Below the pieces are notes generated by a model. The model was given only the letters and a program-made list of their open reading frames with translations. It had not been told where the DNA came from and searched no databases. Made by a program: the position numbers and the translations under genes. From Ruditapes philippinarum (lineage: Eukaryota): a stretch of 62,917 nucleotides of DNA. Location: the NCBI RefSeq assembly GCF_026571515.1, contig NW_026866080.1, forward strand, positions 744,001-806,917, in the 5' to 3' direction. Of the stretch, positions 14,401-40,400 are shown piece by piece (the first letter of the stretch is position 1; every line of letters begins with the position of its first letter).

Positions 14401-16398
14401 CTATTCCACAAGAAACTCTTAACAAGAGCTGTCGGTAGGACAGCAACGCTCGACTATTCTTAGTGCTTGATAGTAAAAAAAAATGCTTGATACAGTTACC
14501 ATCTCCTGTTTACAGGTTGGGGTCATGATGGTGAACAAGTGTGCAAAGTTTCAAAGCCATATGTCAATGGACTTTGAAAATATTTGAATTATTACAAAAA
14601 CTTTAACGTAAATTCTAAGTTGAAAAAGGGGCATAATTCTGTCAAAATGCTTGATAGAGTTACCTCCTCCTGTCTACAGGTTAGGGTTATGATGGTAAAC
14701 AAGTGTGCAAAGTTTCAAAGCCATATGTCAATGGACTTTGAAAATATTTGAACTATTACTAAAACTTTAACGTAAATTCTAAGTCGAAAAAGGAGCATAA
14801 TTCTGTCAAAATGCTTGATAGAGTTACCTCCTCCTGTCTACAGGTTGGGGTCATGATGGTGAACAAGTGTGCAAAGTTTCAAAGCCATATGTCAATGGAC
14901 TTTGAAAATATTTGAACTATTACAAAAACTTTAACATAAATTCTAAGTCGAAAAAGGGGGATAATTCTGTCAAAATGCTTGATACAGTTACCTCCTCCTG
15001 TCTACAGGTTGGGGTCATGATGGTGAACAAGTGTGCAAAGTTTCAAAGCCATATGTCAATGGACTTTGAAAATATTTGAACTATTACAAAAACTTTAACA
15101 TAAGTGGTTACGGCGACGCCGACGCTCGGGTGACTACAATAGCTCTACTTATTCTTATCGAATAGTCGAGCTAAAAATGTCAGTGTTAGCATTCACTTCA
15201 TTTGATATAATATATTGATCTCAAATTTTTATTTGCTGTATCAAATAGACTGAATCTGAAACCTAATTTCGAACATATAGACTGCCTAATAATTTCTGAT
15301 AGGTGAAAATATTCACCATTTCGTCGCCATCTTGCCAAAATGTTTGATCATGTGACTACGAGATGAACCTTTACGGGTTATTTATGCGTAGACAGTTAAG
15401 AAAACAGTACTATATGCTTTTAACCTTCTTTACAAATTACTTTTTTTCTCTCAAAAATTATAAAAGATGATCTGCCGATTTATAATTTACTTTTTTATTT
15501 AAGTATGAAAAATAAAAATAGAAGTAAACAAAAGCTTTAGGTGATCCCATGTGTTGCCTTATGATAGTCTATTGCATGTTGCACTTTTACTTCTGTGTAG
15601 CAGGAGGCACCAAAGTCATGCAAAATGCGTTTTTAATTCAATGGCTATAACTTGGCCAAAATTATTCAACCGGAAAACCTGCATAACATGCCCAAGTACT
15701 TGAGCTACCAATCAATCCTGTAAAGTTTCATTAAAATTGCATTAGTGGTATAAGAATAGCAGTCCAAATAAACTTTAAAAATAAAAATTATTAAAGGGCC
15801 ATAACTCTGACAAAAATCATTCAACTGATAATTGCCGACAATATGCACAACCACACTTGGTACTGATCATCCTTTTAAAGTTTGGATTAAATTGCATCAG
15901 TAGTTTTTCATAAAATTCTGTCATGTCAAGAAAGATGCTCTATATATAGTATGTGCCTGTACTCTAAGCGATTCCTCTTAACTATATGATACATTGGTCT
16001 TCTGTAACTCCTAATTATAATTAACTTGGACCATGGTCAACATCTGCCTGTTGATTTTTCCTTTCTATCTCTCTATCTTCCATTAATGTCAAACCTCTCG
16101 TGGAGAGATAGACATGACTCTAGATTAGTCACTTCAGAGGAAGCTATGAGATACAAGACTAGTGCACCCCTAGTTAGGTAGGAAAAACTGAGTGTCTCTG
16201 AAAAATCCAAAGGGTGTTACCCTGTCCCAGGATCGAACCCGGGATAATTAGGAAAAGGATATAAAATTTGCAAATAATTTATCAATGCAGCCTACAAACC
16301 TGGCACCCTCCCCACACAATCATTAAGTCATTCGCTGCCACAGCAACATGTCCAGCCCTTGGTGGAACAGTTTCAAAAGTAAAGGTAGTTGCATTCAT
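2411..16398 (-). CDS. KLHDC2: Kelch domain-containing protein 2/1-like, paralog A (exons 1-8 seen; exon 5 damaged; possibly a pseudogene)
   Basis: Exons 16398-16300 (MNATTFTFETVPPRAGHVAVAANDLMIVWGGCQ), 14132-14050, 13662-13438 (GDIPPGTSGASG...FGG...SPRDKF), 11258-11165 (LYYFGGFG), 9827-~9757 (WNNQLLVYD; donor lost), 8804-8665 (PRAAH...LFGGRHGDIRMND), 3810-3698 (GRSWHTFT), 2571-2411 (KPREWHTA...IFGG). Exon sizes match paralog B except exon 5. Exons 9-10 were not found in the window. Confidence 0.8.
2657..3630 (-). mobile_element. HINE-like element with internal tandem repeats
   Basis: Starts aacaagaaggccaagatggcc (hairpin), has repeated gtgacctagtttttgaccc units, and ends aagctcacc...gatgagc plus A-run. 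Confidence 0.6.
4291..8522 (-). mobile_element. Nested stack of HINE-like elements
   Basis: Three aacaagagc starts (~4292, ~5020, ~5977), each with a different internal tandem unit. Matching microsatellite/hairpin ends occur at ~6575-6620, ~8080-8133 and ~8460-8522. Confidence 0.6.
6860..8011. mobile_element. Non-autonomous TIR element (hAT-like CAGG termini, 5-bp TSD)
   Basis: TIRs caggcctcgacattagc / gttagtgtcgaggcctg, TSD tgaat on both sides, and subterminal gaccacc repeats. Confidence 0.8.
8790..9372. repeat. ~39-40 bp minisatellite derived from the KLHDC exon-6 acceptor junction
   Basis: Unit ggtactggtccatgaaacagacagaaggtacatgaatttataaa, repeated roughly 14 times. A related array lies at 35780-36060. 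Confidence 0.8.
9524..9755. mobile_element. Palindromic MITE (right end truncated)
   Basis: Near-perfect ~100-bp inverted arms (gcgaccagcatggatccagaccagcctgc). Same family as 12763-13005 but lacking the last ~10 nt. Confidence 0.85.
11388..11592 (+). mobile_element. tRNA-derived SINE-like repeat (3' part)
   Basis: Core ctttcatgtgaggaagc...gcacctgaggtct.tctccacca followed by a (CAAA)n tail. Related copies occur at ~43110-43210 (minus), ~53445-53720 and ~54020-54240. Confidence 0.6.
11753..12240 (-). mobile_element. HINE/Helentron-associated element
   Basis: Hairpin gctgt..gtaggacagc, subterminal inverted repeat ctcgactattc/gaatagtcgag, and a terminal A-run. Confidence 0.7.
12763..13005. mobile_element. 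Palindromic MITE (complete)
   Basis: Termini atatgagc...gctcatat with long inverted arms. Confidence 0.85.
14421..15177 (-). mobile_element. HINE/Helentron-associated element with ~164-bp internal tandem array
   Basis: Start aacaagagctgtcggtaggacagc, about 4 units of caggttggggtcatgatggtgaacaagtgtgc, (GACGCC)n, and end gaatagtcgagctaaaaa. Confidence 0.8.
15919..16118. mobile_element. Possible solo LTR
   Basis: Inverted ends tgtcatgtc...gacatgac and short motifs (atatgtgc-like, tatgatacattg) shared with LTR 1717-1897. No TSD found. Confidence 0.3.
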
Positions 16399-18655
16399 GG
16401 ATGGGCTCCAAATCTTATTTACACAAACTGAAAGTGAAATGTGTTGACAACTTCTGACACATCACATGGAAGCTTGAAATATCGCCTACACTACAACGAT
16501 TAAAAAAATCTTACGAATAAATATAATATTGTTATCGTCTCAAGCATTTTTTCGTGACAGTCGTTCTAGAAATGACTGGTTAATGATTCGATGATTCTTA
16601 AGGTGATCCTGGATGTGATGAAGTGTAGTACTTTTGAATTAATTTCGTAACAGTCGCGTAAAATTCTGGGCAGAAAACTGTTTTTGAATACTTCAGTTCT
16701 TGCCTACATGTATGTATACATTGTATTATCCATTTTATTATGGTGGCAAACGTTTTATGTAACAAATAGGATTTCATGCCGAAATGTCTAAGCCTTTGCA
16801 GAATATAATAGTTTACTGCATATTCTTTTGTTTTGTTTTTTTGTTTGTTTTTTTTTTGGGGTGGGGGTTCGAGTTTTGAATAGCCACCGTGTATATCTAG
16901 TAACGCAGGAATGTGAAAATAACGCAGAAATTGTGCAAAAGTAACGCAGAATTGTGCAATTTAGTGGCTAAAACGAGCACCGCCATAAGTAAATGGTCCA
17001 ATATTTTTTATTGTACACCAAATTGGAATAAATGAGTTAGCGCATACGGTTGCTGAGACATTATATATCCGTTAAACCTCATCAAAAATATTTCCATGAA
17101 AAAGTTTATTTTTCAAGATCATTCGCGAAAATAAGAACCTGACTAGCGTATTTATGGCGATTTTTGTTTCGTTGATATCTTTAAATACAATAACGTACGT
17201 ATTACTTTATGATTTTTTATATTCGGTGTTCCTGAGTCATTTTCCAATCTACTCATGCATGTCATATATTACACTTGATGTAACAGATAAAATGTAATTG
17301 AGACCATTTTTACGAGTTAACGCCGGATTCGTGAATGAAGCACTGACTCAACGGCGGTTATCTCATTAAAAGTAGCTAAATCCTATTTTACCAGCTTCCT
17401 TCATATTGTAAAAGTTTTAAAAATATTTAACAAATTTTTCTATCAATCCCAATCTCAAATTGGAGATACTTCTGGAAAAAAAGATAGGTGTTAGACTTAT
17501 AAATTTAAAATTATAAGATGTAGATGTTGAAAAGTAGATCAGTGACTTTAATTGTCAATTTTTTAGACTTAAGATAAATGTTGTTTGTTATCACTCACAT
17601 ATGTCTGTAAACGTGTTCATAAATGAGTTTAAAATTTCGTCATTTTGATGTTAAAATGTTGAATTCTGGTTAAACCGTTGCTGGGGGGGGGGGGGGGGGT
17701 GGCGTTTTCATAAAACATCAATTACCAAGATATGTTTTTTTGTCATTTTTGTCTCTTTTCATAGACATGATTTTCTATGATATATTGTGCAGCAATCGAT
17801 TGGAGATAAGCTCAGAATTGTTTTACCCGCAACCAACTGATATACTTGCAAACAGTTAACATATGTGTTTATAATTTAACTAAATATCATCATCAAGCCA
17901 TCATCATCATCATCATCATCATAATCATAATCAATGATCATCATCATCATCATGATCATAATTGATCATCATCATAAAAAGTAACAATCGCAACACGAAT
18001 TTTAACTACTTTTGGATATTAAAATTGATATTTCTAATAATATCAGGACATTTTACTTTCTTCATTTTACTTATGAATTAATTTATGCTGATATTTTTTT
18101 AATAAATTCATAGATTTTTGCCATATAAGGTGTAGAGCACTATAACAGAGGCAAAACGTGCATGTATTCGAAAGTCATTAAACGAAAGGAATTGTTTCAG
18201 CTCGCAAGACAGCTAGGGCACAATGATATGTCCATCTATTGTGGAATACTAGTATTTGTAAATAAAAAACCAATGACTTCCCTTCAAATGTCACTATTTA
18301 TTCACTTTAAAAGAGAAAAAAGAGTAATTGTTTTCTAACATTTTATTATTTGTAAAATCAGTTTAACAACATATATATAAAACATAACGATAAAAGCACA
18401 ACAGGAAAATGCATAACAATATTCGTTTAACATGATGAATACCTCGACAACTCCGTGATACACACAAGACAGACAGAAAAAGCAAGATGTAGTGTAAAAA
18501 AGAAAGAAATGTCTATCACAGTGGTTATTCAAATCACAGTCTGATGTTTGTTCGAAATAACACAACAATTTCTTCATTTCAAACGAAAGTATCAGATTTT
18601 GACATTCAAGCACAGTTTGTTGATATTAAATGGAACACAGTCATCCTATATCAAA

Positions 18656-20339
18656 TCAAAATCTTAGCCGAAGTCCCTTGCCAATATCTGACGTTTTGCG
18701 TGGTCTGTCGCCTGCTGACCATGACTTTGATTTTACCCGGAAGTGACGCAAGTCGTCTCTGTGTTCCTTGTGCAACATTGGTTTGTACGTCTGTGGGAAA
18801 CATTGTTCCTGGAAGAAAAACAGATGAAAGTGAAATTTTGATAACCTTATATTAATTACAGTTTCATTTTAATTTATAGATCGTGAAGCTTATTATTTTG
18901 ATATATTAAATTAGAAGCAATGTTTGCATTAAAAACTGCATAAATTTACTTTTAGACATGATCAAGATGAAATATTTTCTATGAATAAATTTATAAGCAA
19001 ATGATTTGAAAGGTTTCAAAATTTTTACAAAGATATCAATGTTTAAATTTAATCAAAGGCTTACCTTGTTTGTGTTGAAGAAAGCTTTATAACCTCCTTC
19101 TAAGAGATAAATCTCGGGAAAGTTGAGTCGAGGGTAGTTGTCTTTGTTCAAATCTCGATCTAGAGCCCTTAAGTGGCGATACCTGAAACAAATATTTCAT
19201 TTTTATTAAACTCCAATAAATAATTGAAAGAAATAAGAAATGAAAGAAAGATTAAAACTCTTTATCGGAGATGACATTGTTGTGATGAATTGAAACATGG
19301 AATATATCTTTTCCGTGTTGAATACATTACTTAAATATGGTTAATATAATTGGTAAACTTAATGAATGTATAATGCTGAAGTTCTCTTACATTTTTGGTC
19401 CTCTTTCAGAAGAAAATTCGCAGTGGAAAATGAGAACATGGTTGTTTGTTGGTGACGTCACTGTTTCTTGGATGAATTGTTTTATCGATTCTTTAGTAAA
19501 TAAATTGACAGCTCCCTGAAAAATAGATAGAATAAATTTATAACAACGTAAAATATCAGTAAAGTTAAAAAAAAATATGCTATAATAATTGACGTCGATA
19601 ACTAAATAATTACATATAAAATGTAAAATATCACTTAAAAGAGCACAACATTGGATCCGCAAATTCTATATTAGTACTAACATAATGATTCTTTTGAATT
19701 TACCTTTATATGACCGCCTCCGAATTCATACGGATATCTACAGTCTATAATCGTTACTTTGTCAACACTGCTGTCGTAGACGCCGTCCAGGACGTCAGAC
19801 ATCGTTTCCGGTGAGATGGCGCTAAGATCGCTATGCTTTCCTGGAATTGTGGGTAGAATATTGACACGTGATCCGTCTGCAATAAGGTCAGATTCTGTAG
19901 ACAGCTTATCAACAGCTTGTATGATGCTCGATATTGGGCTAAGAGTTGTCACTTCTGGTTTGGGTGTTGATGTGAAGCAATGAAATCGTCTTCTCTTCAG
20001 TGTAGGGGTTAAATCGAGACTTTCCGCTTGGCGTTTAACAGGTCCTTTCACATCATTTGCAGTTATTCCAAAATCTAACCTCGTTCTGAAAATATTTAAA
20101 TAAATTTTAGTTACAATAAATGGAAGATGAAAGAGAAAAAATGGCACACGTTTATCATATTGTAAATAATAATTACTGAGAATTCATTTTATATAAAATA
20201 AAATCTACTGCAACGTTTATGTTATATCATGATTTTATATTGTCTGAACTTGAAAATTAATTCAATATTATATAATAGTTGTTTACCTTGTGTTTCTTGC
20301 CAAAGTTACGTCAGTGAAATCTGAAGGTAGCGGAGGCAT
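18656..20339 (-). CDS. CDC25: M-phase inducer phosphatase (Cdc25-like), copy 1, 276 aa
   Basis: Exons 20339-20287, 20085-19704 (IIDCRYPYEFGGGHIK), 19515-19391 (IFHCEFSSERGP, intact HCX5R), 19182-19065 (YPRLNFPEIYLLEGGYKAFF), 18808-18656 (YKPMLH...FRVKSKSW...stop). All junctions are GT-AG and in phase. The start exon is less certain. Confidence 0.93.
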
Positions 20340-21244
20340 TGTTGATATTATTTCTTTCTGTTTGTGAATGTAAATATATAAGATCAGAAGGTTGAATGAT
20401 GAAAAATTCCATATTTTTTCTTTATATACCATTTGAAAAATTTTGCCTACAGAAATTTTGAAAACAGCTCATTGAATTAGCAAACTGTGACGAGATTGTT
20501 TGATTGTTTTGATAACATTGAGCTAGTACAGTCGCCGCCGTCATCGCCCCGACCGGTGTTAAAAACATCACAGCGGCATAATTAACTCGCCATCAAATTA
20601 TTATTAGTATCTATTGTTATGATAATTAGCGATGATTACAGATCAATATTGTTTCTGATAGTTCACGAACTTCTCATTAGATCAAATATCGATTAAAGGT
20701 ATTTGGTAAAAAAAAATCTTGTCTGATTTATATCTTAAAGAAAATATTTTTATTACATATTTAGACTTTATCTGCAAAGTCGAAATTTTTGTTTTACATT
20801 TCATAACGAAATCAATAGTTGGGAAAAATATGTTATGTCTTTAATAGTTTTGTTGGCTTACGGACGAATCGTCCACTTCCATTCATGAGTAAATGTTAAT
20901 AATTTGTTAAATACCGAGTAAATATAAGACTGTTTTACAGCGTAAATTAAAATGACAATACAGAAGCTGTAAAGAAAACGAAAAAATATTATCGAAGTAA
21001 GAGACGTGTGAACATAACAGTATAAACACGAGTACATTTGTATTACACAATGCAACAAATTTTGTACATTTCTCAATTATCAATTATTTCAATAATACTA
21101 GTATTATGTGACGTCACGATACGAATTCAATATTTATTTTATTCATTTATTTACGTATTATCATGGCATTACTGTGCATCAGATATACAGCATAAAAAAT
21201 AAGTGTCATTCAATATTGTCTAAAGTTCTTTAATCATTGCAAAT

Positions 21245-21492
21245 TGATCATCATCTTCTTTGATCATCATCATCATCGACATCACCAACATCACCATCAT
21301 CAACAAGCTATCATCATCATCATTATCATCATCAACAACACCACCAACATTATCATCATTGATCATTTTTATTGATCATCCTCATCACCATTGTCAAACC
21401 CGTCATCATCAAGCCATCATCGTCACTGATCATCATCATAATCATAATCAATGATCATCATCATCATCATGATCATAATTGATCATCATCAT
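21245..21492. repeat. Imperfect (ATC)n microsatellite at the unit junction
   Basis: catcat runs, with homologous tracts at 17886-17975, 24755-24965 and 28465-28540. Confidence 0.9.
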
Positions 21493-22171
21493 AAAAAGTA
21501 ACAATCGCAACACGAATTTTAACTACTTTTGGATATTAAAATTGATATTTCTAATAATATCAGGACATTTTACTTTCTTCATTTTACTTATGAATTAATT
21601 TATGCTGATATTTTTTTACTAAATTCATAGATTTTTGCCATATAAGGTGTAGAGCACTATAACAGAGGCAAAACGTGCATGTATTCGAAAGTCATTAAAC
21701 GAAAGGAATTGTTTCAGCTCGCAAGACAGCTAGGGCACAATGATATGTCCATCTATTGTGGAATACTAGTATTTGTAAATAAAAAACAATGACTTCCCTT
21801 CAAATGTCACTATTTATTCACTTTTAAAAGAGAAAAAAGAGTAATTGTTTTCTAACATTTTATTATTTGTAAAATCAGTTTAACAACATATATATAAAAC
21901 ATAACGTTAAAAGCACAACAGGAAAATGCATAACAATATTCGTTTAACATGATGAATACCTCGACAACTCCGTGATAAAAGACAGACAGAAAAAGCAAGA
22001 TGTAGTGTAAAAAAGAAAGAAATATGTCTATCACAGTGGTTATTCAAATCACAGTCTGATGTTTGTTCGAAATAACATAAAAAAATTCTTCATTTCAAAC
22101 GAAAGTGTCAGATTTTGACATTCAAGCACAGTTTGTTGATATTTAATGGAACACAGTCATCCTATTTCAAA

Positions 22172-23854
22172 TCAAAATCTTAGCCGAAGTCCCTTGCCAA
22201 TATCTGACGTTTTGCGTGGTCTGTCGCCTGCTGACCATGACTTTGATTTTACCCGGAAGTGACGCAAGTCGTCTCTGTGTTCCTTGTGCAACATTGGTTT
22301 GTACGTCTGTGGGAAACATTGTTCCTGGAAGAAAAACAGATGAAAGTGAAATTTTGATAACCTTATATTAATTACAGTTTCATTTTAATTTATAGATCGT
22401 GAAGCTTATTATTTTGATATATTAATTTAGAGGCAATGTTTGCATTAAAAACTGCATAAATTTACTTTTAGACATGATCAAGATGAAATATTTTCTATGA
22501 ATAAATTTATAAGCAAATGATTTGAAAGGTCTCAAAAATTTTACAAAGATATCAATGTTTAAATTTAATCAAAGGCTTACCTTGTTTGTGTTGAAGAAAG
22601 CTTTATAACCTCCTTCTAAGAGATAAATCTCGGGAAAGTTGAGTCGAGGGTAGTTGTCTTTGTTCAAATCTCGATCTAGAGCCCTTAAGTGGCGATACCT
22701 GAAACAAATATTTCATTTTTATTAAACTCCAATAAATAATTGAAAGAAATAAGAAATGAAAGAAAGATTAAAACTCTTTATCGGAGATTACGTTGTTGTG
22801 ATGAATTGAAACATGGAATGTATCTTTTCCGTGTTGAATACATTACTTAAATATGGTAAATATAATTGGTAAACTTAATGAATGTATAATGCTGAAGTTC
22901 TCTTACATTTTTGGTCCTCTTTCAGAAGAAAATTCGCAGTGGAAAATGAGAACATGGTTGTTTGTTGGTGACGTCACTGTTTCTTGGATGAATTGTTTTA
23001 TCGATTCTTTAGTAAATAAATTGACAGCTCCCTGAAAAATAGATAGAATAAATTTATAACAACGTAAAATATCAGTAAAGTTAAAAAAAATATGCTATAA
23101 TAATTGACGTCGATAACTAAATAATTACATATAAAATGTAAAATATCACTTAAAAGAGCACAACATTGGATCCGCAAATTCTATATTAGTACTAACATAA
23201 TGATTCTTTTGAATTTACCTTAATATGACCGCCTCCGAATTCATACGGATATCTACAGTCTATAATCGTTACTTTGTCAACACTGCTGTCGTAGACGCCG
23301 TCCAGGACGTCAGACATCGTTTCCGGTGAGATGGCGCTAAGATCGCTATGCTTTCCTGGAATTGTGGGTAGAATATTGACACGTGATCCGTCTGCAATAA
23401 GGTCAGATTCTGTAGACAGCTTATCAACAGCTTGTATGATGCTCGATATTGGGCTAAGAGTTGTCACTTCTGGTTTGGGTGTTGATGTGAAGCAATGAAA
23501 TCGTCTTCTCTTCAGTGTAGGGGTTAAATCGAGACTTTCCGCTTGGCGTTTAACAGGTCCTTTCACATCATTTGCAGTTATTCCAAAATCTAACCTCGTT
23601 CTGAAAATATTTAAATAAATTTTAGTTACAATAAATGGAAGATGAAAGAGAAAAAATGGCACACGTTTATCATATTGTAAATAATAATTACTGAGAATTC
23701 ATTTTATATAAAATAAAATCTACTGCAACGTTTATGTTATATCATGATTTTATATTATCTGAACTTGAAAATTAATTCAATATTATATAATATTTGTTTA
23801 CCTTGTGTTTCTTGCCAAAGTTACGTCAGTGAAATCTGAAGGTAGCGGAGGCAT
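22172..23854 (-). CDS. CDC25: M-phase inducer phosphatase (Cdc25-like), copy 2, 276 aa
   Basis: Exons 23854-23802, 23600-23219, 23031-22907, 22698-22581, 22324-22172. The protein appears identical to copy 1. Confidence 0.93.
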
Positions 23855-25636
23855 TGTTGATATTATTTCTTTCTGTTTGTGAATGTAAATATATAAGATC
23901 AGAAGGTGAATGATGAAAAATTCCATATTTTTTCTTTATATACCATTTGAAAAATTTTGCCTACAGAAATTTTGAAAACAGCTCAATGAATTAGCAAACT
24001 GTGACGAGATTGTTTGATTGATTTTGATAACATTGAGCTAGTACAGTCGCCGCCGTCAACGCCCCGACCGGCGTTAAAAACATCACAGCGGCATAATTAA
24101 CTCGCCATCAAATTATTATTAGTATCTATTGTTATGATAATTAGCGATGATTACAGATCAATATTGTTTCTGATAGTTCACGAACTTCTCATTAGATCAA
24201 ATATCGATTAAAGGTATTTGGTAAAAAAAAATCTTGTCTGATTTATATCTTAAAGAAAATATTTTTATTACATATTTAGACTTTATCTGCAAAGTCGAAA
24301 TTTTGGTTTTACATTTCATTACGAAATCAATAGTTAGAAAAAATATCTTATGTCTTTAGTAATTTTGTTGGCTTACGGACGAATCGTCCACTTCCATTCA
24401 TGAGTAAATGTTAATAATTTGTTCAATACCGAGTAAATATAAGACTGTTTTACAGCGTAAATTAAAATGACAATACAGAAGCTATAAAGAAAACGAAAAA
24501 ATATTATCGGAAGTAAGAGACGCGTGAACATAACAGTATAAACACGAGTATTACACAATGCAACAAATTTTGTACATTTCTCAATTATCAATTTTTTCAA
24601 TAATACTAGTATTATGTGACGTCACGATACGAATTCAATATTTATTTTATTCATTTATTTACGTATTATCATGACATTACTGTGCATCAGATATACAGCA
24701 TAAAAAATAAGTGTCATTCAATATTGTCTAAAGTTCTTTAAGCATTGCAAATTGATCATCATCTTCTTTGATCATCATCGACATCACCATCATCAACAAC
24801 CTATCATCATCATCATCATTATTATCATCATCAACAACAACACCACCAACATTATCATCATTAATCATTTTTATTGATCATCCTCATCACCATTGTCAAA
24901 CCCGTCAGCATCAAGCCATCATCGTCACTGATCATCATCATAATCATAATCATTGATCATCATCATAAAAAGTAACAAACGCAACACGAATTTTAACTAC
25001 TTTTGGATATTAAAATTGATATTTCTAATAATATTAGGACATTTTACATTCTTCATTTTACTTATGAAGTAATTTATGCTGATATTTACTAAATTCATAG
25101 ATTTTTGCCATATAAGGTGTAGAGCACTATAACAGAGGCAAAACGTGCATGTATTCGAAAGTCATTAAACGAAAGAAATTGTTTCAGCTCGCAAGACAGC
25201 TAGGGCACAATGATATGTCCATCTATTGTGGAATACTAGTATTTGTAAATAAAAAACAATGACTTCCCTTCAAATGTCACTATTTATTCACTTTAAAAGA
25301 GAAAAAAGAGTAATTGTTTTCTAACATTTTATTATTTGTAAAATCAGTTTAACAACATGTATATAAAACATAACGTTAAAAGCACAACAGGAAAATGCAT
25401 AACAATATTCGTTTAACATGATGAATACCTCGACAACTCCAAAAAAGACAGACAGAAAAAGCAAGATGTAGTGTAAAAAAGAAAGAAATATGTCTATCAC
25501 AGTTGTTATTCAAATCACAGTCTGATGTTTGTTCGAAATAACATAAAAATTTCTTCATTTCAAACGAAAGTATCAGATTTTGACATTCAAGCACAGTTTG
25601 TTGATATTAAATGGAACACAGTCATCCTATATCAAA

Positions 25637-27319
25637 TCAAAATCTTAGCCGAAGTCCCTTGCCAATATCTGACGTTTTGCGTGGTCTGTCGCCTGCTGAC
25701 CATGACTTTGATTTTACCCGGAAGTGACGCAAGTCGTCTCTGTGTTCCTTGTGCAACATTGGTTTGTAAGTCTGTGGGAAACATTGTTCCTGGAAGAAAA
25801 ACAGATGAAAGTGAAATTTTGATAACCTTATATTAATTACAGTTTCATTTTAATTTATAGATCGTGAAGCTTATTATTTTGATATATTAATTTAGAGGCA
25901 ATGTTTGCATTAAAAACTGCATAAATTTACTTTTAGACATGATCAAGATGAAATATTTTCTATGAATAAATTTATAAGCAAATGATTTGAAAGGTCTCAA
26001 AATTTTTACAAAGATATCAATGTTTAAATTTAATCAAAGGCTTACCTTGTTTGTGTTGAAGAAAGCTTTATAACCTCCTTCTAAGAGATAAATCTCGGGA
26101 AAGTTGAGTCGAGGGTAGTTGTCTTTGTTCAAATCTCGATCTAGAGCCCTTAAGTGGCGATACCTGAAACAAATATTTCATTTTTATTAAACTCCAATAA
26201 ATAATTGAAAGAAATAAGAAATGAAAGAAAGATTAAAACTCTTTATCGGAGATGACATTGTTGTGATGAATTGAAACATGGAATATATCTTTTCCGTGTT
26301 GAATACATTACTTAAATATGGTTAATATAATTGGTAAACTTAATGAATGTATAATGCTGAAGTTCTCTTACATTTTTGGTCCTCTTTCAGAAGAAAATTC
26401 GCAGTGGAAAATGAGAACATGATTGTTTGTTGGTGACGTCACTGTTTCTTGGATGAATTGTTTTATCGATTCTTTAGTAAATAAATTGACAGCTCCCTGA
26501 AATATAGATAGAATAAATTTATAACAACGTAAAATACCAGTAAAGTTAAAAAAATTATGCTACAATAATTGACGTCGATAACTAAATAATTACATATAAA
26601 ATGTAAAATATCACTTAAAAGAGCACAACATTGGATCCGAAAATTCTATATTAGTACTAACATAATGATTCTTTTGAATTTACCTTAATATGACCGCCTC
26701 CGAATTCATACGGATATCTACAATCTATAACCGTTACTTTGTCAACACTGCTGTCGTAGACGCCGTCCAGGACGTCAGACATCGTTTCCGGTGAGATGGC
26801 GCTAAGATCGCTATGCTTTCCTGGAATTGTGGGTAGAATATTGACACGTGATCCGTCTGCAATAAGGTCAGATTCTGTAGACAGCTTATCAACAGCTTGT
26901 ATGATGCTGGATATTGGGCTAAAAGTTGTCACTTCTGGTTTGGGTGTTGATGTGAAGCATTGAAATCGTTTTCTCTTCATTGTAGGAGTTAAATCGAGAC
27001 TTTCCGCTTGGCGTTTAACAGGTCCTTTCACATCATTTCCAGTTATTCCAAAATCTAACCTCGTTCTGAAAATATTTAAATAAATTTTAGTTACAATAAA
27101 TGGAAGATGAAAGAGAAAAAATGGCACACGTTGATCATATTGTAAATAATAATTACTGAGAATTCATTTTATATAAAAAAAAATCTACTGCAACGTTTAT
27201 GTTATATCATGATTTTATATTGTCTGAACTTGAAAATTAATTCAATATTATATAATAGTTGTTTACCTTGTGTTTCTTGCCAAAGTTACGTCAGTAAAAT
27301 CTGAAGGTAGCGGAGGCAT
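25637..27319 (-). CDS. CDC25: M-phase inducer phosphatase (Cdc25-like), copy 3, 276 aa
   Basis: Exons 27319-27267, 27065-26684, 26496-26372, 26163-26046, 25789-25637. Six amino-acid changes versus copy 1 in exon 2. The catalytic motif is intact. Confidence 0.93.
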
Positions 27320-30300
27320 TGTTGATATTATTTCTTTCTGTTTGTGAATGTAAATATATAAGATCAGAAGTTGAATGATGAAAAATTCCATATTTTTTCT
27401 TTATATACCATTTGAAAAATTTTGCCTAAAGAAATTTTGAAAACAGCTCATTGAATTAGCAAACTGTGACGAGATTGTTTGATTGGTTTTGATAACATTG
27501 AGCTAGTAAAGTCGCCGCCGTCATCGCCCCGACCGGTGTTAAAAACATCACAGCGGCATAATTAACTCGCCATCAAATTATTATTAGTATCTATTGTTAT
27601 GATAATTAGCGATGATTACAGATCAATATTGTTTCTGATAGTTCACGAACTTCTCATTAGATCAAATATCGATTAAAGGTATTTGGTAAAAAAAATCTTG
27701 TCTGATTTATATCTTAAAGTAAATATTTTTATTACATATTTAGACTTTATCTGCAAAGTCGAAATTTGGGTTTTACATTTTATTACGAAATCAATAGTTG
27801 CGTGAAGACGCGTGAACATAACAGTATAAACACGAGTATTACACAATGCAACAAATTTTGTACATTTCTCAATTATCAATTTTTTCAATAATACTAGTTA
27901 GTAGTATTATGTGACGTCACGATACGAATTCAATATTTCTTTTATTCATTTATTTACGTATTATCATGACATGACTGTACATCATACATACAGCATTAAA
28001 ATAGAATACATTTTATGTAGTAATAGGTCATTCAATATTGTTTTATATGAAACATAAATATAACAAAATTACTTTTATAAGCTTTACATGGATACAAACT
28101 AAACATGTACATCTTAAAAACTTCCAGGGAGCGTTGATGCGTGTTTTTTTCTTCTTTTTTTCCTCTCTTTACTGATAAAGTAATTAATAATTATGTCATT
28201 TCTTGCTATCTTCATATCAGGTGTCGAGCATTGCTAAAGATTATAGTAAGGACAACTAATTATACATATATGATATATCAGTAGCTGTGGATTACATTCA
28301 CATTTAGATGTAGGTTTCATTTGAATATCGGACATATTTAACCTTACATTATAAGATCCAATATGATATCACCATTTTCATCACTGACCTTTGATAAAAA
28401 TTGAAAAAAAATGAGTAAGACTAATAAAGGTATAAATGTCTGAAGTTCTCTGGTTAATCAACATTGATCATCATTATTATCATCATTGATCATCATCATC
28501 ACCAGTATCGTCATCATCATCATCATTGATCATCATCAAAAAACAACAACAAACACAACAAGTATTCTAACTACTTTTGAATATTAAAATTGGTAATTTT
28601 CTAATAATATCAGGACAGTTTTCATTCTTCATTTTACTAATAAAGTAAATAATCTTATTAATTGTTTCTTATATCTTCGTAGACTTTTATCATATTATAA
28701 GTAGAGCACTATTACAGTTACTGTGAAGGCTAGTACAAAGTTTAGCAAGTGTTATTGTGAACAAATATAGGTTTGTTTGAGAAACGAGCTGCTAATGCCA
28801 TTTCATACCAATAGATTACAATTTGTAATATCCTGTATCCTATAGAGCCTACAAAAAAGTAACATTTTATGGCCCATGAATCAAATAATGAAATGTCTTC
28901 TTTCTTTAAATAAAAGCCATGTATTCTTTTTTTATTTATTTAGAAATAATCAAAATAGCACATACAATAGAGGTAGAGACAAGTAAAAAATAACAAAAAT
29001 ATAACACAATGCAAAATAAAACGGTCAACAAAGTTGAGTGGTAAAATCAACTGCATCTAATATGAATCAATGAAATAATCAAAATAAAATTCAGAAACAT
29101 GAATATTTGTAAAATTGATGTATGCTCCACAGTGTTGCTTTTATAAACATGGCCATGCTAGGAGTACACTTGAATTATAGCTGTGCTACACAGATAAGTA
29201 GAAAAATACATTTCGAGACACAGTGAACTTCAGCAAATCTGACTGAACTCCCGCTGAATGGTATAAGACTATTGATGGTATCAACAAACTAACTACTACT
29301 ATCTAAGAAATCAGTCAATAAATGAAAGAGCTATGCCACAGCAGAAGATGAATCTGCAACTATTTGGTCACCCAGAAATTTTCCAGGAGCATAAAAACAA
29401 ATTTAAGATTGAGCCGAGCACTCCACTATTCTCAGTGCTCAATAGTAAACTTAAGATTGTTACAGTGCCCTTGATATTACCTAAAGTGGGCATGGCGGCT
29501 ATGACTCACAAAGGTGCTTCTGCATTCAAAGTCTGAAGTTTTCTGGGCAATGCACTCTGACTAAATGACCAATTTTATGTTTTGCTATTACAGGTGACTT
29601 TGACCTTTGACCTCAAATGGGTATGACGGATAGAACTTATAAGGTCTGATAAAGTAGCATTGTTAGTACACAAGTTAATGGCAATAACCTTAAAACTTAA
29701 CCAAACAGGTAAATCAAAACCAACACTGCCGAGTGGCTCATCACAAAAGCCCCAATTTTTCTTCTAAAAATGGAGCAAATTAAAATGTTAAAATACAATG
29801 TATACAATAACATTGCACAGTACATGTGATAATACATAATAAAACAGATATCTATAAAGCCACTTGCTGTGCAGCATGAAAAGCTATTACATTTATAGCC
29901 CAGCATGATATTTTATTAACTTTTGGCACTACACTTTTGTATGTTCACTTAGATAATTTATTTTACATTGTGACAAAAAAACTAACTGCATGAAAGTGTT
30001 AAAAACTATACTTGAAAATAAGTCGTTAGGGAGGTTAGAGAAAATAAACTTTGCAAGAAAAAAAAATGAATAACTAATAAACAAGGTAGACACAAATGCA
30101 AATAGGATATAAAAATGAAGACAATAAGTAAATAGGCATGTCTTTTCTGAATTATCATCATACAAATTATTTCTTACAAAAACAAATGTGTCAGTTTTTC
30201 ATATTTTCTATATATTTTTTTTTTCAAAATATTTTTTTTTAAAGAATTATACAAATACTTCATGTCTCACAGAAGGCTACAAGAACATTTCTCAATTATT

Positions 30301-34400: not shown

Positions 34401-37400
34401 TGACAAACAGGAGTAACCTGTTGTACAGGTAGGAGGCATGATTATGACCAAGTCTGCAAAGTTCTAAAGCCATATGTCAATGGACTTTGAAAATATTTGA
34501 CGTGGTATGCAAACTTTAACATGGACAATCAGGGAACTAGGATATGTCTCCTTATACCTCCAAAAGTCAAGCTAAATATGCTAATAATAAAAGAGTGCAC
34601 TGACTACAAGTTTCTCTAAGAAAATGACTTGTTTTCCTAAAAATTGAAATATTGTTATCATGAGTAAATCTCAAAGATAGTAATGTCCCAATAAAATTAC
34701 TCACTTAAAGGAACATTGTCAGTAGAATATCCGCCATAAAGGAAGATAACTTCATCCGAGACAGCTGTAAAGGTATGCCATGATCTTCCACATGGACAGG
34801 CACCTTCAACATATAACCTGAAATGTAAAATGCATGAGAGAAAAAAAAGCTCACAGCTCCCATAAAAAAGCCATACGAAACAGAAATTAATTTGAAATGT
34901 GATGTTGTGAAATAGTTTAGATAAGCAGTAATATAATCACAAAGGTTTTGAGGGATTAATTACAAATTCTAACATGACTTATGAGTTTGTCACCATAAAC
35001 AAAGATGGCAATAAAAAACTGGTGTAAAACTTGGCTGTTTTTGTTTGCATTAAAATGGATAAAGAATGGCACCATTTATATAACCAACAGCACCCTTTAT
35101 ATAATTAACAGTGTCATTCATATAACCAAAAGCACAATTTATATAACCAACAGATACCATTTATATATCCAACAACACCATTTATATAACCAACAGAACC
35201 ATTTATATAACCAACAGAACCATTTATATAACCATTCATTAGCAGTGTAATGATGTCATCCAGTGAGCATCTCATTCATAGAATGATTATCTAGCATGGA
35301 TGTTAACACTATACAATTCATAGTCATATGTAAATTTAAAGTGTTAAATTAATAATTGAACAAAATATATATACGATACATAAAGTTTTTTTCTTGTGAT
35401 CTTGTTTCTTTTTTATAAAACAGAACAGCCAGATATGAAAATTGGCAACGTAAAAATATTATTTATTTTGCCTTATTACAATTGAAATAATAAGGGTCTG
35501 AGCACATTTTTCGGTTATTTAACACCGGTTTGTGGTTTTTAAAATCATTTGTGGTCAATTCCTACACATCAACGCCAGCAGTTTGGGTAAAATAAGCGCT
35601 CAACAATTTAACCTTAAAAAAATTATAACTGCCAAATGATATATACTTACTCTCCTGACCAAGTAAGAGTTTCTAATTCTAATGAATGTAGATCATTCAT
35701 TCTTTTGCTGCCATGACGACCACCAAATAAATATACCACATTTTTTAATCTGACTGCTGTGTGAGCTGCTCGAGGAATTGGTACTGGTCCCTGAAACAGA
35801 TACAAGGTACATGAATTTATAAAGATATTGCTACTAGCAGTTACATGAAGTTATAAAGGTATTGATACTGGTGCATGAAACAGACAGAAGGTACATGAAT
35901 TTCTAATGATATTAAGACAGGTACATGAAATGGACAAAAAGTACATGAATTAATAAAGGTATTGGTACTGATTCATGAAACAGACAGAAGGTACATGAAT
36001 TTATAATGATATTGAGACAGGGATGTACATGCAATGGTACTGTTCCCTGAAGGTACCTACAGAAGGTATGTGTACTAAGGTACTGCTTCCAGAATAGGAA
36101 ATTTGTTGTTTATCCCTTATCTACTAATATAGCAATTGAATACTATTAATTTGATATGGAACAATTTTCTTATGTTTTTCTTAATAAATCTGTATTAATA
36201 AATAGGACATTCAAACTTTTGACTATTAATGATAGGAAAACAAAATGATTGAACAAATTTTGAATTTTTGTGTGTGAAATATTTGCTTATTCATTGCTTA
36301 AAAACTTAAAATAACCAGTAACATCTACATTAGCAACAAACAAAGAAAGGAGAACTACTTGACCGACAAAGAAAGGAAAACTACTTTAACAAACAAGAGC
36401 TGTCGGTAGGACAGCAACGCTCGACTATTCTTAGTGCTTGATAGTAAAAAAATTGCTTGATACAGTTACCTCCTCCTATTTACAGGTTGGGGTAATGATG
36501 GTGAACAAGTGTGCGAAGTTTCAAAGCCATATGTCAATGAACTTTGAAAATATTTGAGGTATTACAAAAACTTTAACATAAATTCTAAGTCGAAAAAGGA
36601 GCATAATTCTGTCAAAATGCTTGATAGATTTACCTCCTCCTGTCTACAAGTTGGGGTCATGATGGTGAACAAGTGTGCAAAGTTTCAAAGCCATATGTCA
36701 ATGGACTTGGAAAATATTTAAGGTATTACAAAAACTTTAACATAAATTCTAAGTCGAAAAAGGGGCATAATTCTGTCAAAATGCTTGATAGAGTTACCTC
36801 CTCCTGTCTACAGGTTGGGGTAATGATGGTGAACAAGTGTGCAAAGTTTCAAAGCCATATGTCAATGGACTTTGAAAATATTTGAACTATTACAAAAACT
36901 TTAACATAAGTGGTTACGCCGACGCCGACGCTCTGGTGACTGCAATAGCTCTACTTATTCTTATCGAATGGTCGAGCTAAAAATGTAGGTACAAAATAAT
37001 TTGATCATGAATTTTGATATGAACACACAGCAGAATAAGTAATAAGTATAGTACATGAAACGAGTTAGTTACGAGGATATAACACTGGCTGGGGTGACAT
37101 CAAGCCATGATCAAGGGATGTTTCTGCTAAAATAAATCGCGAGACCGTTAGGCCGAGACTAATTAGTATAATCATAAATTATAAGCTATTAGAATATGAT
37201 ATCTTTAAAGAAGTCTAAATATAAACATATATGCCCATGAACTATGATGTACATATAAGTGATTTGAACTTAATCCATATGACTGTTAAGAGAACTAACA
37301 AGAGCTGTCAGTAGGACAGCAACGCTCGACTATTCTTAGTGCTTGATAGTTAAAAAAATGCTTGATACAGTTACCCCCTCCTATTAACAGGTTGGGGTAA

Positions 37401-40400
37401 TGATGGTGAACAAGTGTGCAAAGTTTCAAAGCCATATGTCAATGGACTTTGAAAATATTTGAACTATTACAAAAACTTTAACATAAATTCTAAGTCGAAA
37501 AAGGGGCATAATTCTGTCAAAATGCTTGATAGAGTTACCTCCTCCTGTCTACAGGTTGGGGTCATGATGGTGAACAAGAGTGCAAAGTTTCAAAGCCATA
37601 TGTCAATGGACTTTGAAAATATTTGAACTATTACAAGAACTTTAACATAAGTGGTTACGCCGACGCAGACGCCGACACTGACACCGACGCCGACGCTCGG
37701 GTGACTGCAATAGCTCTACTTATTCTTATCGAATAGTCGAGCTAAAAATGTCAAGGTCAGTCAGTACAAGCTTACTTGACTGAATATCTCATACCTTGCA
37801 CCTTGGGTTACTCCATCTATTGCTTTCTATATCATACACAAGAAGTTGATTATTCCATTCCCTGTCTTGTGGCTGTAAAAGAAACGAAAAGTGAAGTGCA
37901 TTTCCCTATCACAATTTCCATTAAAATAAGATGATACATGTACTTTTCTCAATATGGTAATGTTGAAAAAGACCTAGCTTATAAAAGATTTCTTCTATAC
38001 ACATATATTCCTTAATTGATAGATGCCTAGTCTGACCTTTAATTTAAACTGTATTCTTTTTTTAAGAAATATTTCAGACTGAAGTTTCTTTTTCTACTCC
38101 ACTAATCTTATACCGGTTATTCAAATTGAACTGATTAGGATCATGAAGGGACCTATGCATTGCTGTTAAAATGAGAAATTTAATCATTTAACATCTTATG
38201 ATACACATTATCTTGTATAATAAACTGTATAAAATAGAAACTTTTTCTATAAAATAGATTTAACCAGAGACCAGTATACAAAATTTATGATTTAACACAT
38301 ACCTACCATGGTTTCAATGTTTGCACAGTAATATGGGCAAATACATACAGTAATGCTTTCTGTCGCAAATTAATATAAAATAGAGAATTATCTATACAGT
38401 GTTTCTGGATACTGTACCAGTAATTAGTTTTTCACTTTTGCAAACAGCTTTGAAAGATTAATATCTTCAGCAAAACTAGCTTAAAAAACACTTTTAAATG
38501 CATCTACACGTCATTGTTGCCTCACTAGTTTTGGAGGGAGTGGGTTGGGTTATAAAACACACTGACAGTGTAACGGTCATATGGTACCATCCGGTTAGCG
38601 TTAGACTGTTAATCGGCCAATCTTGGTCCGATTCGCAGATGTGCAGGTCAATTTCATTGTGGTTGATCATGAAATCCTTTCTACAGTCATTTGCACTGTA
38701 CCTCTGCTCTGGCATGTACAGAAGATATTAGATATTGGTTCCTTGCAAAAGCGAAGGCAACTAGTACTGGTAAACTGCTTGACAGTCCACCAATGTACAA
38801 TGCGGTGGCTGAACTGTGCGTTGGTAAATTCATTGTGGCTAACTGCCGTGATCCAGAGTGAAAATTACCAACACCACCACCACTATGGTCATATGGCGTC
38901 CCTTCATTATTTCAAGCACAGAGGGCACTGAGTAGAACCATTAACATTCTGTGAGCTAAATGGACTAAATTAAAAGATTCAAAGTCCCTGATGAGATTCA
39001 AACCAACAGCAGTGAAGGAAGTAGAAAGAATATCACTGTTCCTCCATTCATTATTTTAGGTTCTAGTGATTACTGTAGACTATGATTTAGTAGATCCATT
39101 GGCATCCCCTTAACTGGTGGATAACTTGCATGATAGGCTACAGACTCACACCAGCATGGACGTAATGCTTGGAAACCTTATACCTGAACATCTCTACAAC
39201 AGTTGTCTTTAATTATTTCAAATTCAATCAACCAAGAAAATATATGCTTAATACAGATCAGATATAATGAAAATATATAGCAAACTGTAACAACAAAACA
39301 CATACTACTGTGGAATTAGTGTCCATGACAAACTCTCCATTTTCATAAAGATACTTTCCTGTTCTTATATTCACACCAAAACCACCAAAATAATATAATC
39401 TGAAGATAGGAAAAAAATTAAAGTATAATGATGTTATTTGAGCACCATGATTGAGCACCATGATTTTAAGCATTTCAAAATAAATTATGGTAATTAGTAT
39501 AATCATAAATTATAAGCTATTAGAATATGATATCTTTATAAAAGTCTAAATATTAACATATATGGCCATGAATTATGATGTATATATAAGTGATTTGAAC
39601 TTAATCCATATGACTGTTAAGAGAACTTAAAATGTAGGTACAAAATAATTTGATCATGAATTATGATATACAAGTTATATGAACACACAGCAGAATAAGA
39701 ATATATAAATGTTAATTATTATGAATACTTTAAACACCTGTTTAGTATTAAGCTTAGAAAATAAACCCAAAAATATATCTTTTGTAAAAATACTTTTCTA
39801 AAAAGATTTACTTGTTATTATAAGACCAAGCTGTAAATTTATCTCTAGGACTTGGTAGCAGTTCTGATTCTGGTATTATATGTTTCCATGTCAGCTGTTG
39901 TAAGTCTAAACAGTATAATTCATTTGTGTTGCCTTCCTCCGTATGACCTCCAAATATATACATTTTACTTGCAATTAGTAAGGCTGAAGCACCAGAGGTT
40001 CCTGGTGGAATGTCACCCTCGGTTACATGTTGGGTCCTACAAAAACCACCAAAAAAAACAACACCTGGTTATATTTGTACATATCAGACACAAATCTCTA
40101 CTATTACATTGGCACCAAATAAAAAGTCAATCTTTCGACATTTCAAAGCAGGTATCGGGTGAATAAAGAAATAAGTATAATATATGTATACATACATGTA
40201 TAACTAGACTGTAGACATAAACTTGACTTTTGGAAACACTTTGATAATTTGTCAAAAATTCTGTGCAAAGGGATGATAACTCTTAACAAGAGCTGTCGGT
40301 AGGACAGCACGCTCGACTATTCTAAGTGCTTGACAGTAAAAGAGCCTTGATAATGTTAAATTTTTTAAGTTCACAAAAGGGCTAATTTTTTTTTATAAAT

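Follow-up and report, generated by a model that had tools for sequence, protein, structure and literature searches.

A probable recent tandem triplication of a compact Cdc25 gene in Ruditapes philippinarum

In a stretch of 62,917 nucleotides from Ruditapes philippinarum (NCBI RefSeq assembly GCF_026571515.1, contig NW_026866080.1, positions 744,001 to 806,917; "the window", numbered here from its first letter), we find an array that we read, with a probability of roughly three in four, as a self-contained, expressed, compact Cdc25 gene that was recently triplicated in tandem by ordinary birth-and-death turnover in a large family. Such turnover of duplicates would explain the array better than a special dosage adaptation.

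Organization of the array and its genes

Window positions 17887 to ~28040 comprise three head-to-tail units, each ~3.5 kb and 97–99% alike, with start-to-start distances of 3515–3517 and 3465–3474 bases. Self-BLAST aligned 17887–24335 with 21403–27799 (97.46% over 6456 columns) and 17924–20821 with 24918–27800 (97.69% over 2901 columns), and the identity per 100-column bin was 97–99% across most of the 3.5-kb unit. Spacing and self-BLAST together confirm the three direct repeats described in an initial annotation of this DNA. An (ATC)n tract is present at all four unit borders, with the units in one orientation. The u1/u2 and u2/u3 junctions share homology (94% over 1402 columns), and to the right of the array a lone copy of the unit start (28467–28717) is 79% identical to 17903–18148.

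17887..28040, minus strand: three-unit tandem array, from self-BLAST and binned identity
17887–21402, minus strand: unit u1
21403–24917, minus strand: unit u2
24918–about 28040, minus strand: unit u3; homology to u1/u2 stops near 28000–28040
17886..17975, no strand: imperfect (ATC)n at the array's left border, period 3, 28.7 copies
21247..21492, no strand: imperfect (ATC)n across the u1/u2 junction, period 3, 78.7 copies
24755..24966, no strand: imperfect (ATC)n across the u2/u3 junction, period 3, 68.7 copies
28457..28717, no strand: (ATC)n tract at 28457–28538, then the lone 250-base unit-start copy

Every unit carries a minus-strand gene of 276 codons in five exons with GT..AG borders, the exons summing to 831 bases per copy (276 codons plus stop). 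These had been described as five in-phase exons, which is right in that all five fit a single frame in each copy, and wrong if taken to mean phase 0 throughout, as the intron phases are 2, 0, 2, 0. The 276-residue product consists of a ~75-residue tail and, after it, a full Cdc25 catalytic domain whose Cys-X5-Arg loop reads HCEFSSERGP. Each unit contributes one of the three occurrences of this motif in the window, and the motif is identical in all three copies; the active site is intact, as originally reported. A 351-codon open reading frame at 48093–49148 had no match in Pfam or the ESM Atlas.

18656..20339, minus strand: copy 1 gene, borders read directly, introns 2–4 seen removed in RNA contigs; E1 20287–20339 (ATG at 20339), E2 19704–20085, E3 19391–19515, E4 19065–19182, E5 18656–18808 (TGA)
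22172..23854, minus strand: copy 2 gene, from exon mapping; E1 23802–23854, E2 23219–23600, E3 22907–23031, E4 22581–22698, E5 22172–22324
25637..27319, minus strand: copy 3 gene, from exon mapping; E1 27267–27319, E2 26684–27065, E3 26372–26496, E4 26046–26163, E5 25637–25789

Copy 2 corresponds to RefSeq XP_060573389.1 (P0174, "M-phase inducer phosphatase 1-like"; 23801–23926 matched at 100%) and copy 3 to XP_060573388.1 (P0177, "1-B-like"; 27266–27391 matched at 100%). The first 42 residues of each protein agree with their copy at 100%, both contain the five exon peptides in order, and the splice structure is identical. No RefSeq record for copy 1 was present among the protein clusters examined. 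The RefSeq models start 24 codons farther upstream, giving 300 residues instead of our 276. We prefer the conserved ATG because the upstream one lies in a different frame in copy 1, which has a 1-base insertion between the two, is missing from two of the six group-A copies, and lies only 9 bases past a TATA-like box. All six aligned group-A copies share, without variation, the conserved ATG, the peptide of the first exon, the donor site and the GGTATA box. The box, which copies 2 and 3 carry at −86, is probably a TATA-like promoter element of each unit; every unit also has a stop codon and an AATAAA to itself.

The initial annotation also reported a ~180-bp upstream deletion at ~27800 in copy 3. 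A gap of 176 bases is indeed present at about 27803–27807, outside the ~430-base stretch before the ATG that the paralogues have in common; paralogue homology stops short of the indel, which may be either a deletion in copy 3 or an insertion gained by the ancestor of the other two.

20421..20426, minus strand: TATAAA in the GGTATA box of copy 1, 87 bases upstream of the conserved ATG
18342..18347, minus strand: AATAAA, ~309 bases past the copy 1 stop codon
20824..21003 (in u2, about 24340–24520), no strand: ~176-base segment upstream of copies 1 and 2, missing in copy 3

Identity as a compact Cdc25 phosphatase

Exons were searched singly, never as a joined spliced protein. With phmmer against PDB chains, exons 2–5 matched the catalytic domains of human CDC25A/B/C in order along the chain (E-values of 1.3e-17 for E2, 4.1e-07 for E3, 2.1e-06 for E4 and 1.4e-06 for E5), and CDC25 chains were the only significant matches of these exons in the PDB sequence search. 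Among the human CDC25 structures (PDB 1c25, 1cwr/1qb0, 3op3), the exons align to residues 19–83, 85–127, 132–162 and 168–202 of 1cwr_A. Against Pfam, the single exons, short pieces as they are, gave just a weak Rhodanese match (E 0.066), and Rhodanese (PF00581) is the sole Pfam domain on record for XP_060573389.1 and XP_060573388.1. The active-site loop HCEFSSERGP is identical in the clam gene and human CDC25A/B/C. CDC25B has Arg and Tyr substrate-docking "hot spots" after its active site. The clam segment DRDLNKDNYP aligns with ERDLAVNDYP of CDC25B, with R, D and Y-P kept, and these may include the docking residues. By homology, the clam protein should strip the inhibitory phosphates at Thr14/Tyr15 from Cdk1 and thereby promote entry into M phase.

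The clam protein departs from the human ones at the N-terminus. Human CDC25 proteins have several hundred N-terminal regulatory residues, far more than the ~75 that precede the catalytic domain in the clam protein, which is without the N-terminal regulatory domain PF06617: exon 2 did not match this domain in Pfam, and it is not on record for P0174 or P0177. A 486-residue relative, P0034, does have it. The absence of PF06617 bears on regulation, not on catalysis. From its sequence, the clam gene is a compact subtype of the Cdc25, or M-phase inducer, phosphatases.

Some Cdc25 paralogues of Drosophila and C. elegans are specialised for meiosis or early divisions. Extra Cdc25 copies in these animals (string/twine in Drosophila, cdc-25.1–4 in C. 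elegans) are few, old and diverged, unlike the clam copies, which are 97–99% identical, stand in tandem and are part of a family with more than 20 members. One paper cites twine and cdc-25.2 (PMC4254928).

Divergence, transcription and copy count

Copies 1 and 2 differ at a single coding base, synonymously, with identical exon peptides, and overall by ~1–2.5% including indels; "almost identical", the original wording, is accurate. Copy 3 has 12 private coding differences, one in exon 1, nine in exon 2, one in exon 3 and one in exon 5. The "six substitutions in exon 2" first attributed to it are correct at the protein level, where all six amino-acid differences lie in exon 2 and five precede the catalytic core, while the nucleotide count there is nine. 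Nor are all six changes of copy 3. With the paralogue on contig C8107 as outgroup, three (M>L, K>R and Q>H) arose on the common lineage of copies 1 and 2 and two (L>F and I>V) in copy 3; the sixth has no assignable direction. Gene conversion inside the array is not needed as a source of the exon-2 cluster: at 28 copy-3-private sites compared with C8107, 12 retain the outgroup letter, 11 are derived and five are undecided, a split that a simple ((1,2),3) history predicts.

Copies 1 and 2 have a synonymous divergence (dS) of 0.005; from either of them to copy 3 it is 0.033–0.039. Counted exon by exon with the two intron-split codons excluded, dN/dS was 0.24–0.29 between copy 3 and copies 1/2 (six non-synonymous against 6–7 synonymous changes) and 0.26–0.32 against paralogues. 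Judged by these ratios, all three copies are under constraint. The open frames in all three copies and the dS range of 0.005–0.039 bear out that an intact Cdc25-type gene was recently triplicated in tandem.

The Cdc25 array is transcribed and spliced. Record 4 of the X15 contigs (1057 bases, minus strand) joins 19703|19514, 19388|19179 and 19064|18807, so that introns 2, 3 and 4 are removed at the predicted borders, and X16, a run on record as RNA-Seq, joins 19064|18807 across intron 4. The skipped segments are bounded by CT..AC in plus-strand letters, GT..AG in the direction of the gene, and the spliced X15 contig terminates at 18343, at the AATAAA. Transcription had been proposed as a check on the array, and these two RNA-type runs supply it. 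The exon 1–exon 2 splice has no support in the RNA contigs, record 5 of X15 being unspliced across 20049–20296. A third run, X22, carries an RNA-Seq cDNA label but was rejected as expression evidence. Its depth over introns and intergenic bins equals that over exons, its loose ends start or stop at GATC, and none of its reads supports the three splice joints of the X15 and X16 contigs, which is the behaviour of a proximity-ligation DNA library.

Could only one copy be in use, with the others silent and on the way to becoming pseudogenes? No copy 3 transcripts were recognised among the RNA contigs, those that can be distinguished showing copy 1/2-type letters only (the X16 exon-2 contig, 19761–19964, is one such). 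Copy 3 lacks the 176 upstream bases, copy 1 has its 1-base insertion between the two ATGs, and decayed relatives exist elsewhere, on C8107 at 71.7 kb and, with stops, on C15386. Yet the coding regions of all three copies are free of stops, frameshifts and splice-site losses, the 176-base gap falls outside the upstream region shared with paralogues, and the RNA contigs from both runs mix letters of all three copy types in the 3′ UTR and are thus not assignable to one copy. We regard the silencing of some copies as the least probable of the alternatives, and quite unlikely.

The copy number of three is that of the assembly alone, and the true locus might instead hold one or two copies, with heterozygous alleles set in tandem or the length of the array mis-assembled. 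Clams are highly heterozygous, and the divergence between copies 1 and 2, one base of coding sequence and ~1–2.5% overall, could fit an allelic range. No reads cross the unit junctions: the u1/u2 microsatellite spans 246 bases, too many for the 150-base X22 reads, and the contigs of X9, a DNA run, break there. X9 contig depths (about 1500–1950) were rejected as a measure of copy number, the flank being repetitive or uncovered. Neither flank has an alternative haplotype contig in the assembly, where both match just themselves at full length, so alleles must have been merged somewhere. From X22, whose depth is uneven, we used letter fractions alone and drew neither expression nor copy number. 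Letters private to copy 1 are absent at 10 of the 12 listed places, and the X22 individual may lack copy 1 or have another allele. Against over-expansion, each unit has private substitutions and indels, including the gap of copy 3, the internal junctions are mutually homologous, and the window has no N, with the contig end ~35 kb from the array. Intermediate X22 fractions (0.40–0.67) at eight of 34 listed places, where the alternative letter is that of copy 2, copy 3 or both in all eight, indicate that another individual carries two or more versions. Tandem Cdc25 clusters also recur on C8107 and C12443. Over-expansion by the assembly is improbable on this evidence, if the foremost of the alternatives.

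Origin of the array and the wider Cdc25 family

The position of the unit borders inside (ATC)n microsatellites fits unequal crossing-over. Most likely, one ancestral gene was flanked by (ATC)n tracts, and unequal crossing-over or slippage between them gave rise to the array; copy 3 would have separated first, and copies 1 and 2 very recently. The paralogue on C8107 is 95–99% identical from the promoter through exon 4 and just 50–70% beyond, a pattern that suggests exchange between loci.

The initial annotation took Cdc25 to be usually single or low copy, which fails in this genome. Its proposed search for other Cdc25 loci found many, with 26 exon-2 and 23 exon-3 matches and, in the genome stretches examined, at least 22 intact HCEFSSERGP exons on 15 contigs. 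Further tandem clusters hold three copies on C8107 and three on C12443. In an exon-2 tree, the three array copies form one clade (96/84) within the compact group.

Special dosage amplification, as originally proposed, loses its premise of low copy number in a family already of some twenty-odd members. In that account, the copies were selected to raise the supply of Cdc25 for oocyte maturation or rapid cleavage; in the wider form weighed here, copy 3 may also be diverging in function. In its favour, no copy is broken, each is under constraint, and on the lineage of copies 1 and 2 three amino-acid changes crowd into seven codons of a basic patch, TPT-M/L-KR-K/R-RF-Q/H. A 2014 paper reports that six CDC25/CDC25-like probes were at higher abundance in released oocytes of the related clam Venerupis decussata than in stripped ones (PMC4254928); these probes, however, come from another species and are not tied to the compact subfamily in the passages on Cdc25. 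Three more copies are a small step beside at least 22 family members, and dN/dS well below 1 with only six non-synonymous changes gives no signal of positive selection. Adaptive dosage is, in our judgement, somewhat less probable than over-expansion. Under birth-and-death turnover, the array would be one small cluster in a large Cdc25 family with active turnover, both in this clam and in other bivalves.

Mya arenaria, Dreissena and Mercenaria all have many annotated short Cdc25-like proteins. In Mya arenaria, 18 near-identical "M-phase inducer phosphatase 1-like" sequences fall into one 90% cluster. Its 15 listed members all lie on one 76.8-Mb record; 11 of these 15 have 276–278 residues, and 13 are numbered between XP_052820183 and XP_052820221. 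Given the nearby accession numbers and the one shared record, these genes may be in tandem. They have the C-terminal half in common with the clam gene (P0003 is 58% identical to exon 2) but form a separate clade (100/98) in the exon-2 tree, which points to independent amplification in each species. Seven CDC25 genes are cited for Crassostrea gigas in the 2014 paper (PMC4254928). Beyond this remark, the main text of open articles yielded no paper on bivalve Cdc25 expansion or tandem arrays.

On its own the array is of little import, a young duplicate of a gene already named publicly in a family already large. It does offer a dated example of array birth, with its borders in microsatellites. Short Cdc25 genes without the checkpoint-responsive N-terminus are abundant in molluscs, bivalves above all, and could be of interest for research into how oocytes mature, into early cleavage or into neoplasia of clams. 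We tentatively propose, at somewhat less than even odds, that the compact Cdc25 lacking a regulatory N-terminus is a large bivalve-wide family, perhaps undescribed, which renews itself through microsatellite-seeded tandem arrays with exchange between loci. If so, the triplication would be a snapshot of the renewal of a compact family with twenty-odd members in Ruditapes and many more annotated sequences in Mya and Dreissena. Were the copies maternal or early-embryonic, they would point to a control of meiotic release and cleavage by gene number instead of by one checkpoint-regulated Cdc25.

Structure and divergence of the array

Three units lie head-to-tail between 17887 and ~28040, with repeat-family spacings of 3515–3517 and 3465–3474 bases, matching the three ~3.5-kb units read in the initial annotation. 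Self-BLAST aligned 17887–24335 with 21403–27799 at 97.46% identity over 6456 columns and 17924–20821 with 24918–27800 at 97.69% identity over 2901 columns, a similarity far beyond chance, and there are no N letters within the window. In a three-way alignment most of the unit is 93–100% identical per 100-column bin while the unit ends diverge, and the upstream gap in copy 3, previously put at ~180 bp, spans 176 columns. The unit junctions are contained in imperfect (ATC)n tracts of 90–246 bases; such tracts mark the left border and the two internal junctions, and another (ATC)n tract lies 420 bases beyond the right end of the array. It is followed, at 28467–28717, by a lone stretch of 250 bases that resembles the start of a unit (79% identity to 17903–18148). 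Together, the bordering tracts and this lone copy on the right suggest that the ancestral locus was likely arranged as repeat, gene, repeat; the array would most simply have arisen when the tracts on either side of the gene underwent unequal crossing-over or slippage.

Each of the three units encodes the motif HCEFSSERGP once, on the minus strand, and five exons with GT..AG borders were read in unit 1, as expected from the intact five-exon genes annotated at first.

Exons of copy 1
20339–20287, minus strand, exon 1, ATG at start, GT..AG borders
20085–19704, minus strand, exon 2, GT..AG borders
19515–19391, minus strand, exon 3, GT..AG borders
19182–19065, minus strand, exon 4, GT..AG borders
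18808–18656, minus strand, exon 5, TGA at end

These exons total 831 bases, or 276 codons plus the stop, with intron phases 2, 0, 2, 0. Searched singly rather than as a spliced protein, exons 2 to 5 matched the catalytic domains of human CDC25A/B/C among PDB sequences (E-values 1.3e-17, 4.1e-07, 2.1e-06 and 1.4e-06), in succession along the chain (1cwr_A residues 19–83, 85–127, 132–162 and 168–202). The only Pfam match of the single exons was a weak one to Rhodanese. The catalytic domain has ~75 residues ahead of it, and the regulatory domain PF06617 is absent both in the single-exon Pfam search and in the records of the public products. The GGTATA box (its TATAAA at -87 or -86), the ATG, the peptide MPPxPSDFTDVT and the exon-1 donor are invariant in all six aligned copies of the subgroup of close paralogues that includes the array, and an AATAAA lies ~309 bases 3' of the stop codon. 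From its sequence, every unit looks self-sufficient.

Copies 2 and 3 are already named in RefSeq, as XP_060573389.1 and XP_060573388.1, respectively, each 100% identical over the first 42 residues; both are Ruditapes philippinarum proteins of 300 residues, retrieved by querying a word index with P0003 of Mya arenaria, and contain all five exon peptides in order. The RefSeq models differ from ours in starting 24 codons upstream of the conserved ATG.

Upstream ATG and conserved start, 72–73 bases apart
20411 to 20339, minus strand, copy 1
23926 to 23854, minus strand, copy 2
27391 to 27319, minus strand, copy 3

In copies 2 and 3 the upstream ATG is the start used by RefSeq; it shares the frame of the main ATG there and lengthens the protein by a hydrophobic stretch of 24 residues. 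A 1-base insertion between the two ATGs breaks the frame in copy 1; translation from the upstream ATG would there yield a 36-codon upstream ORF that overlaps the main start. Because of this frameshift, and because the upstream ATG is missing in two of the six subgroup copies and lies 9 bases downstream of the TATA-like box, a predicted length of 276 residues is preferred.

Copies 1 and 2, described from the outset as almost identical, have the same exon peptides and are one synonymous base apart. Between copies 2 and 3 there are six synonymous and six non-synonymous changes, and copy 3 has dS of 0.033–0.039 and dN/dS of 0.24–0.29 against copies 1 and 2 (two intron-split codons, in which the alignments show no difference, are excluded). 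The six exon-2 substitutions originally counted thus hold at the amino-acid level: all are in exon 2, five of them before the catalytic core. Rooted on the paralogue at 79–81 kb of contig C8107, three changes (M>L, K>R, Q>H) fall on the branch leading to copies 1 and 2 and two (L>F, I>V) on that of copy 3, and the A/G change is assigned no polarity. By these polarized changes the copy history is ((1,2),3), both splits being recent.

A ~520-base dispersed element (16885–17410) adjoins the array on the left; it has at least 40 copies elsewhere in the genome at 86–92% identity, 31 of them with a weaker inverted partial copy adjacent. A 164-base satellite family occurs on either side of the array. 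Elsewhere, the block 41405–42345 is duplicated at 43894–44837 (97.6% identity), and the window's longest ATG ORF (351 codons, 48093–49148, minus strand) has no Pfam match at E ≤ 0.01 and no usable ESM Atlas match.

Satellite arrays in the window, periods 163–168 bases
14480–15103
36450–36909
37355–37650
41599–42263
44092–44754
58864–59853

Transcription and copy number in public runs

The stretch or part of it is contained in 20 of 24 listed public runs from ten studies, five of the runs being recorded as RNA, and four runs were compared with 17000–21600. Run X15, whose kind was guessed as RNA, yielded a 1057-base minus-strand contig (20049–19703, 19514–19388, 19179–19064, 18807–18343) without introns 2, 3 and 4, exactly at the predicted borders. 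In X16, an RNA-Seq library labeled mollusc metagenome, one contig joins 19064 to 18807, and a 204-base exon-2 contig (19761–19964) shows no difference from copy 1 and so has the letters of copies 1 and 2 at 19929 and 19943. Since the genome search listed no near-identical intron-less copy, we read these contigs as mRNA. No contig of the four runs shows the exon 1–exon 2 splice over 17000–21600, and X15 record 5 is unspliced across 20049–20296; no copy 3 transcripts were seen in these contigs.

Another of these runs, X22 (2026), was rejected as expression evidence. It is labeled TRANSCRIPTOMIC RNA-Seq cDNA, but introns and intergenic DNA in 17000–21600 are as deep as exons, there are no splice joints, and many reads continue into unrelated sequence at GATC sites, so it behaves as a GATC-ligation DNA library and looks like a Hi-C-type library filed as RNA.

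The count of three units rests on the assembly, which has no second contig for either flank; contigs and reads of the compared runs end at the (ATC)n tracts of the unit junctions. Among 34 listed variant places, X22 carries an alternative letter in 40–67% of reads at eight (all eight the letter of copy 2 and/or copy 3), in 96–100% at 19 (18 of them a copy 2 or copy 3 letter) and in none at seven; copy-1-private letters are absent at 10 of 12 of the listed places. Another individual therefore has at least two versions, mosaics of the assembled copies. In X9, contigs of low depth (~28 vs. ~1900 for the main ones) lead from 21151 back to 17682 and from 17706, via 19 intervening letters, to 20339; these joins may be alternative locus structures or chance joins through repeats.

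Cdc25 copies in this genome and in other bivalves

The search for other Cdc25 loci that the initial annotation proposed was run over the genome with exons 2 and 3, which match 26 and 23 places, respectively, on 16 contigs. In the stretches examined, HCEFSSERGP is intact at 22 places on 15 contigs, C8884 lying outside this count.

Cdc25 genes by structure (numbers beginning with C are contigs of the same genome)
Compact, five exons: the array, two more on C8107, one on C10173; decayed copies, one on C8107 and one on C15386
Intron-poor, exons 2 and 3 fused: ten copies, on C11665, C4585 (twice), C11557, C5995, C5918, C2083 and C12443 (three, clustered)
Exon 2 split in two: C825, C5099 (twice), C13630, C12978

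In the intron-poor subgroup exon 2 is 53–61% identical, exons 2 and 3 form one open frame and HCEFSSERGP is intact in all ten copies; exons 4 and 5 are only 12–18 bases apart in seven of them, the exceptions being the three within 16 kb on C12443. Allelic duplication may account for some of the short contigs, C5918 and C2083 for example. The paralogue at C8107:79001–81850 is 95–99% identical to window 18300–20770 from promoter through exon 4, and ~50–70% identical from intron 4 on (exon 5 peptide, 76%), a mosaic that suggests gene conversion or chimeric duplication between loci. In a 76-column tree whose deeper forks are weak, the array copies form one clade (96/84) inside the compact group, and the compact proteins of Mya arenaria form their own (100/98).

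Searching protein representatives with exon 2 returned 1087 relatives at E ≤ 0.001. By our own tally of the best 120 matches of the word-index search with P0003, isoforms included, Mya arenaria has 20 clusters (76 sequences), Mercenaria mercenaria 12 (24), Dreissena polymorpha 9 (63) and Ruditapes 7 (15). Of the 18 sequences in one 90% Mya cluster, the 15 listed are all on one record, 11 of them of 276–278 residues and 13 numbered XP_052820183 to XP_052820221. A Solemya velum model (P0002, KAL5006213.1, 581 residues) contains three Cdc25 catalytic stretches in a row, probably because the gene caller merged three tandem genes; this is a hint that a protobranch bivalve, too, has tandem Cdc25 copies. 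According to a 2014 study of Venerupis decussata oocytes (PMC4254928), seven CDC25 genes are reported for Crassostrea gigas, and six CDC25-type probes were more abundant in released than in stripped V. decussata oocytes. Apart from the remark on seven oyster genes, searches of openly readable papers found neither the array nor the wider expansion described.

The initial observation is thus confirmed, with minor corrections, and so is its reading: a Cdc25 gene that is intact and transcribed was recently triplicated in tandem in a bivalve. The premise that Cdc25 is usually low-copy fails in this lineage, and the case built on it for a special dosage amplification is therefore weak. The under-described, bivalve-wide family of compact Cdc25 proteins is a more interesting lead than the array itself.
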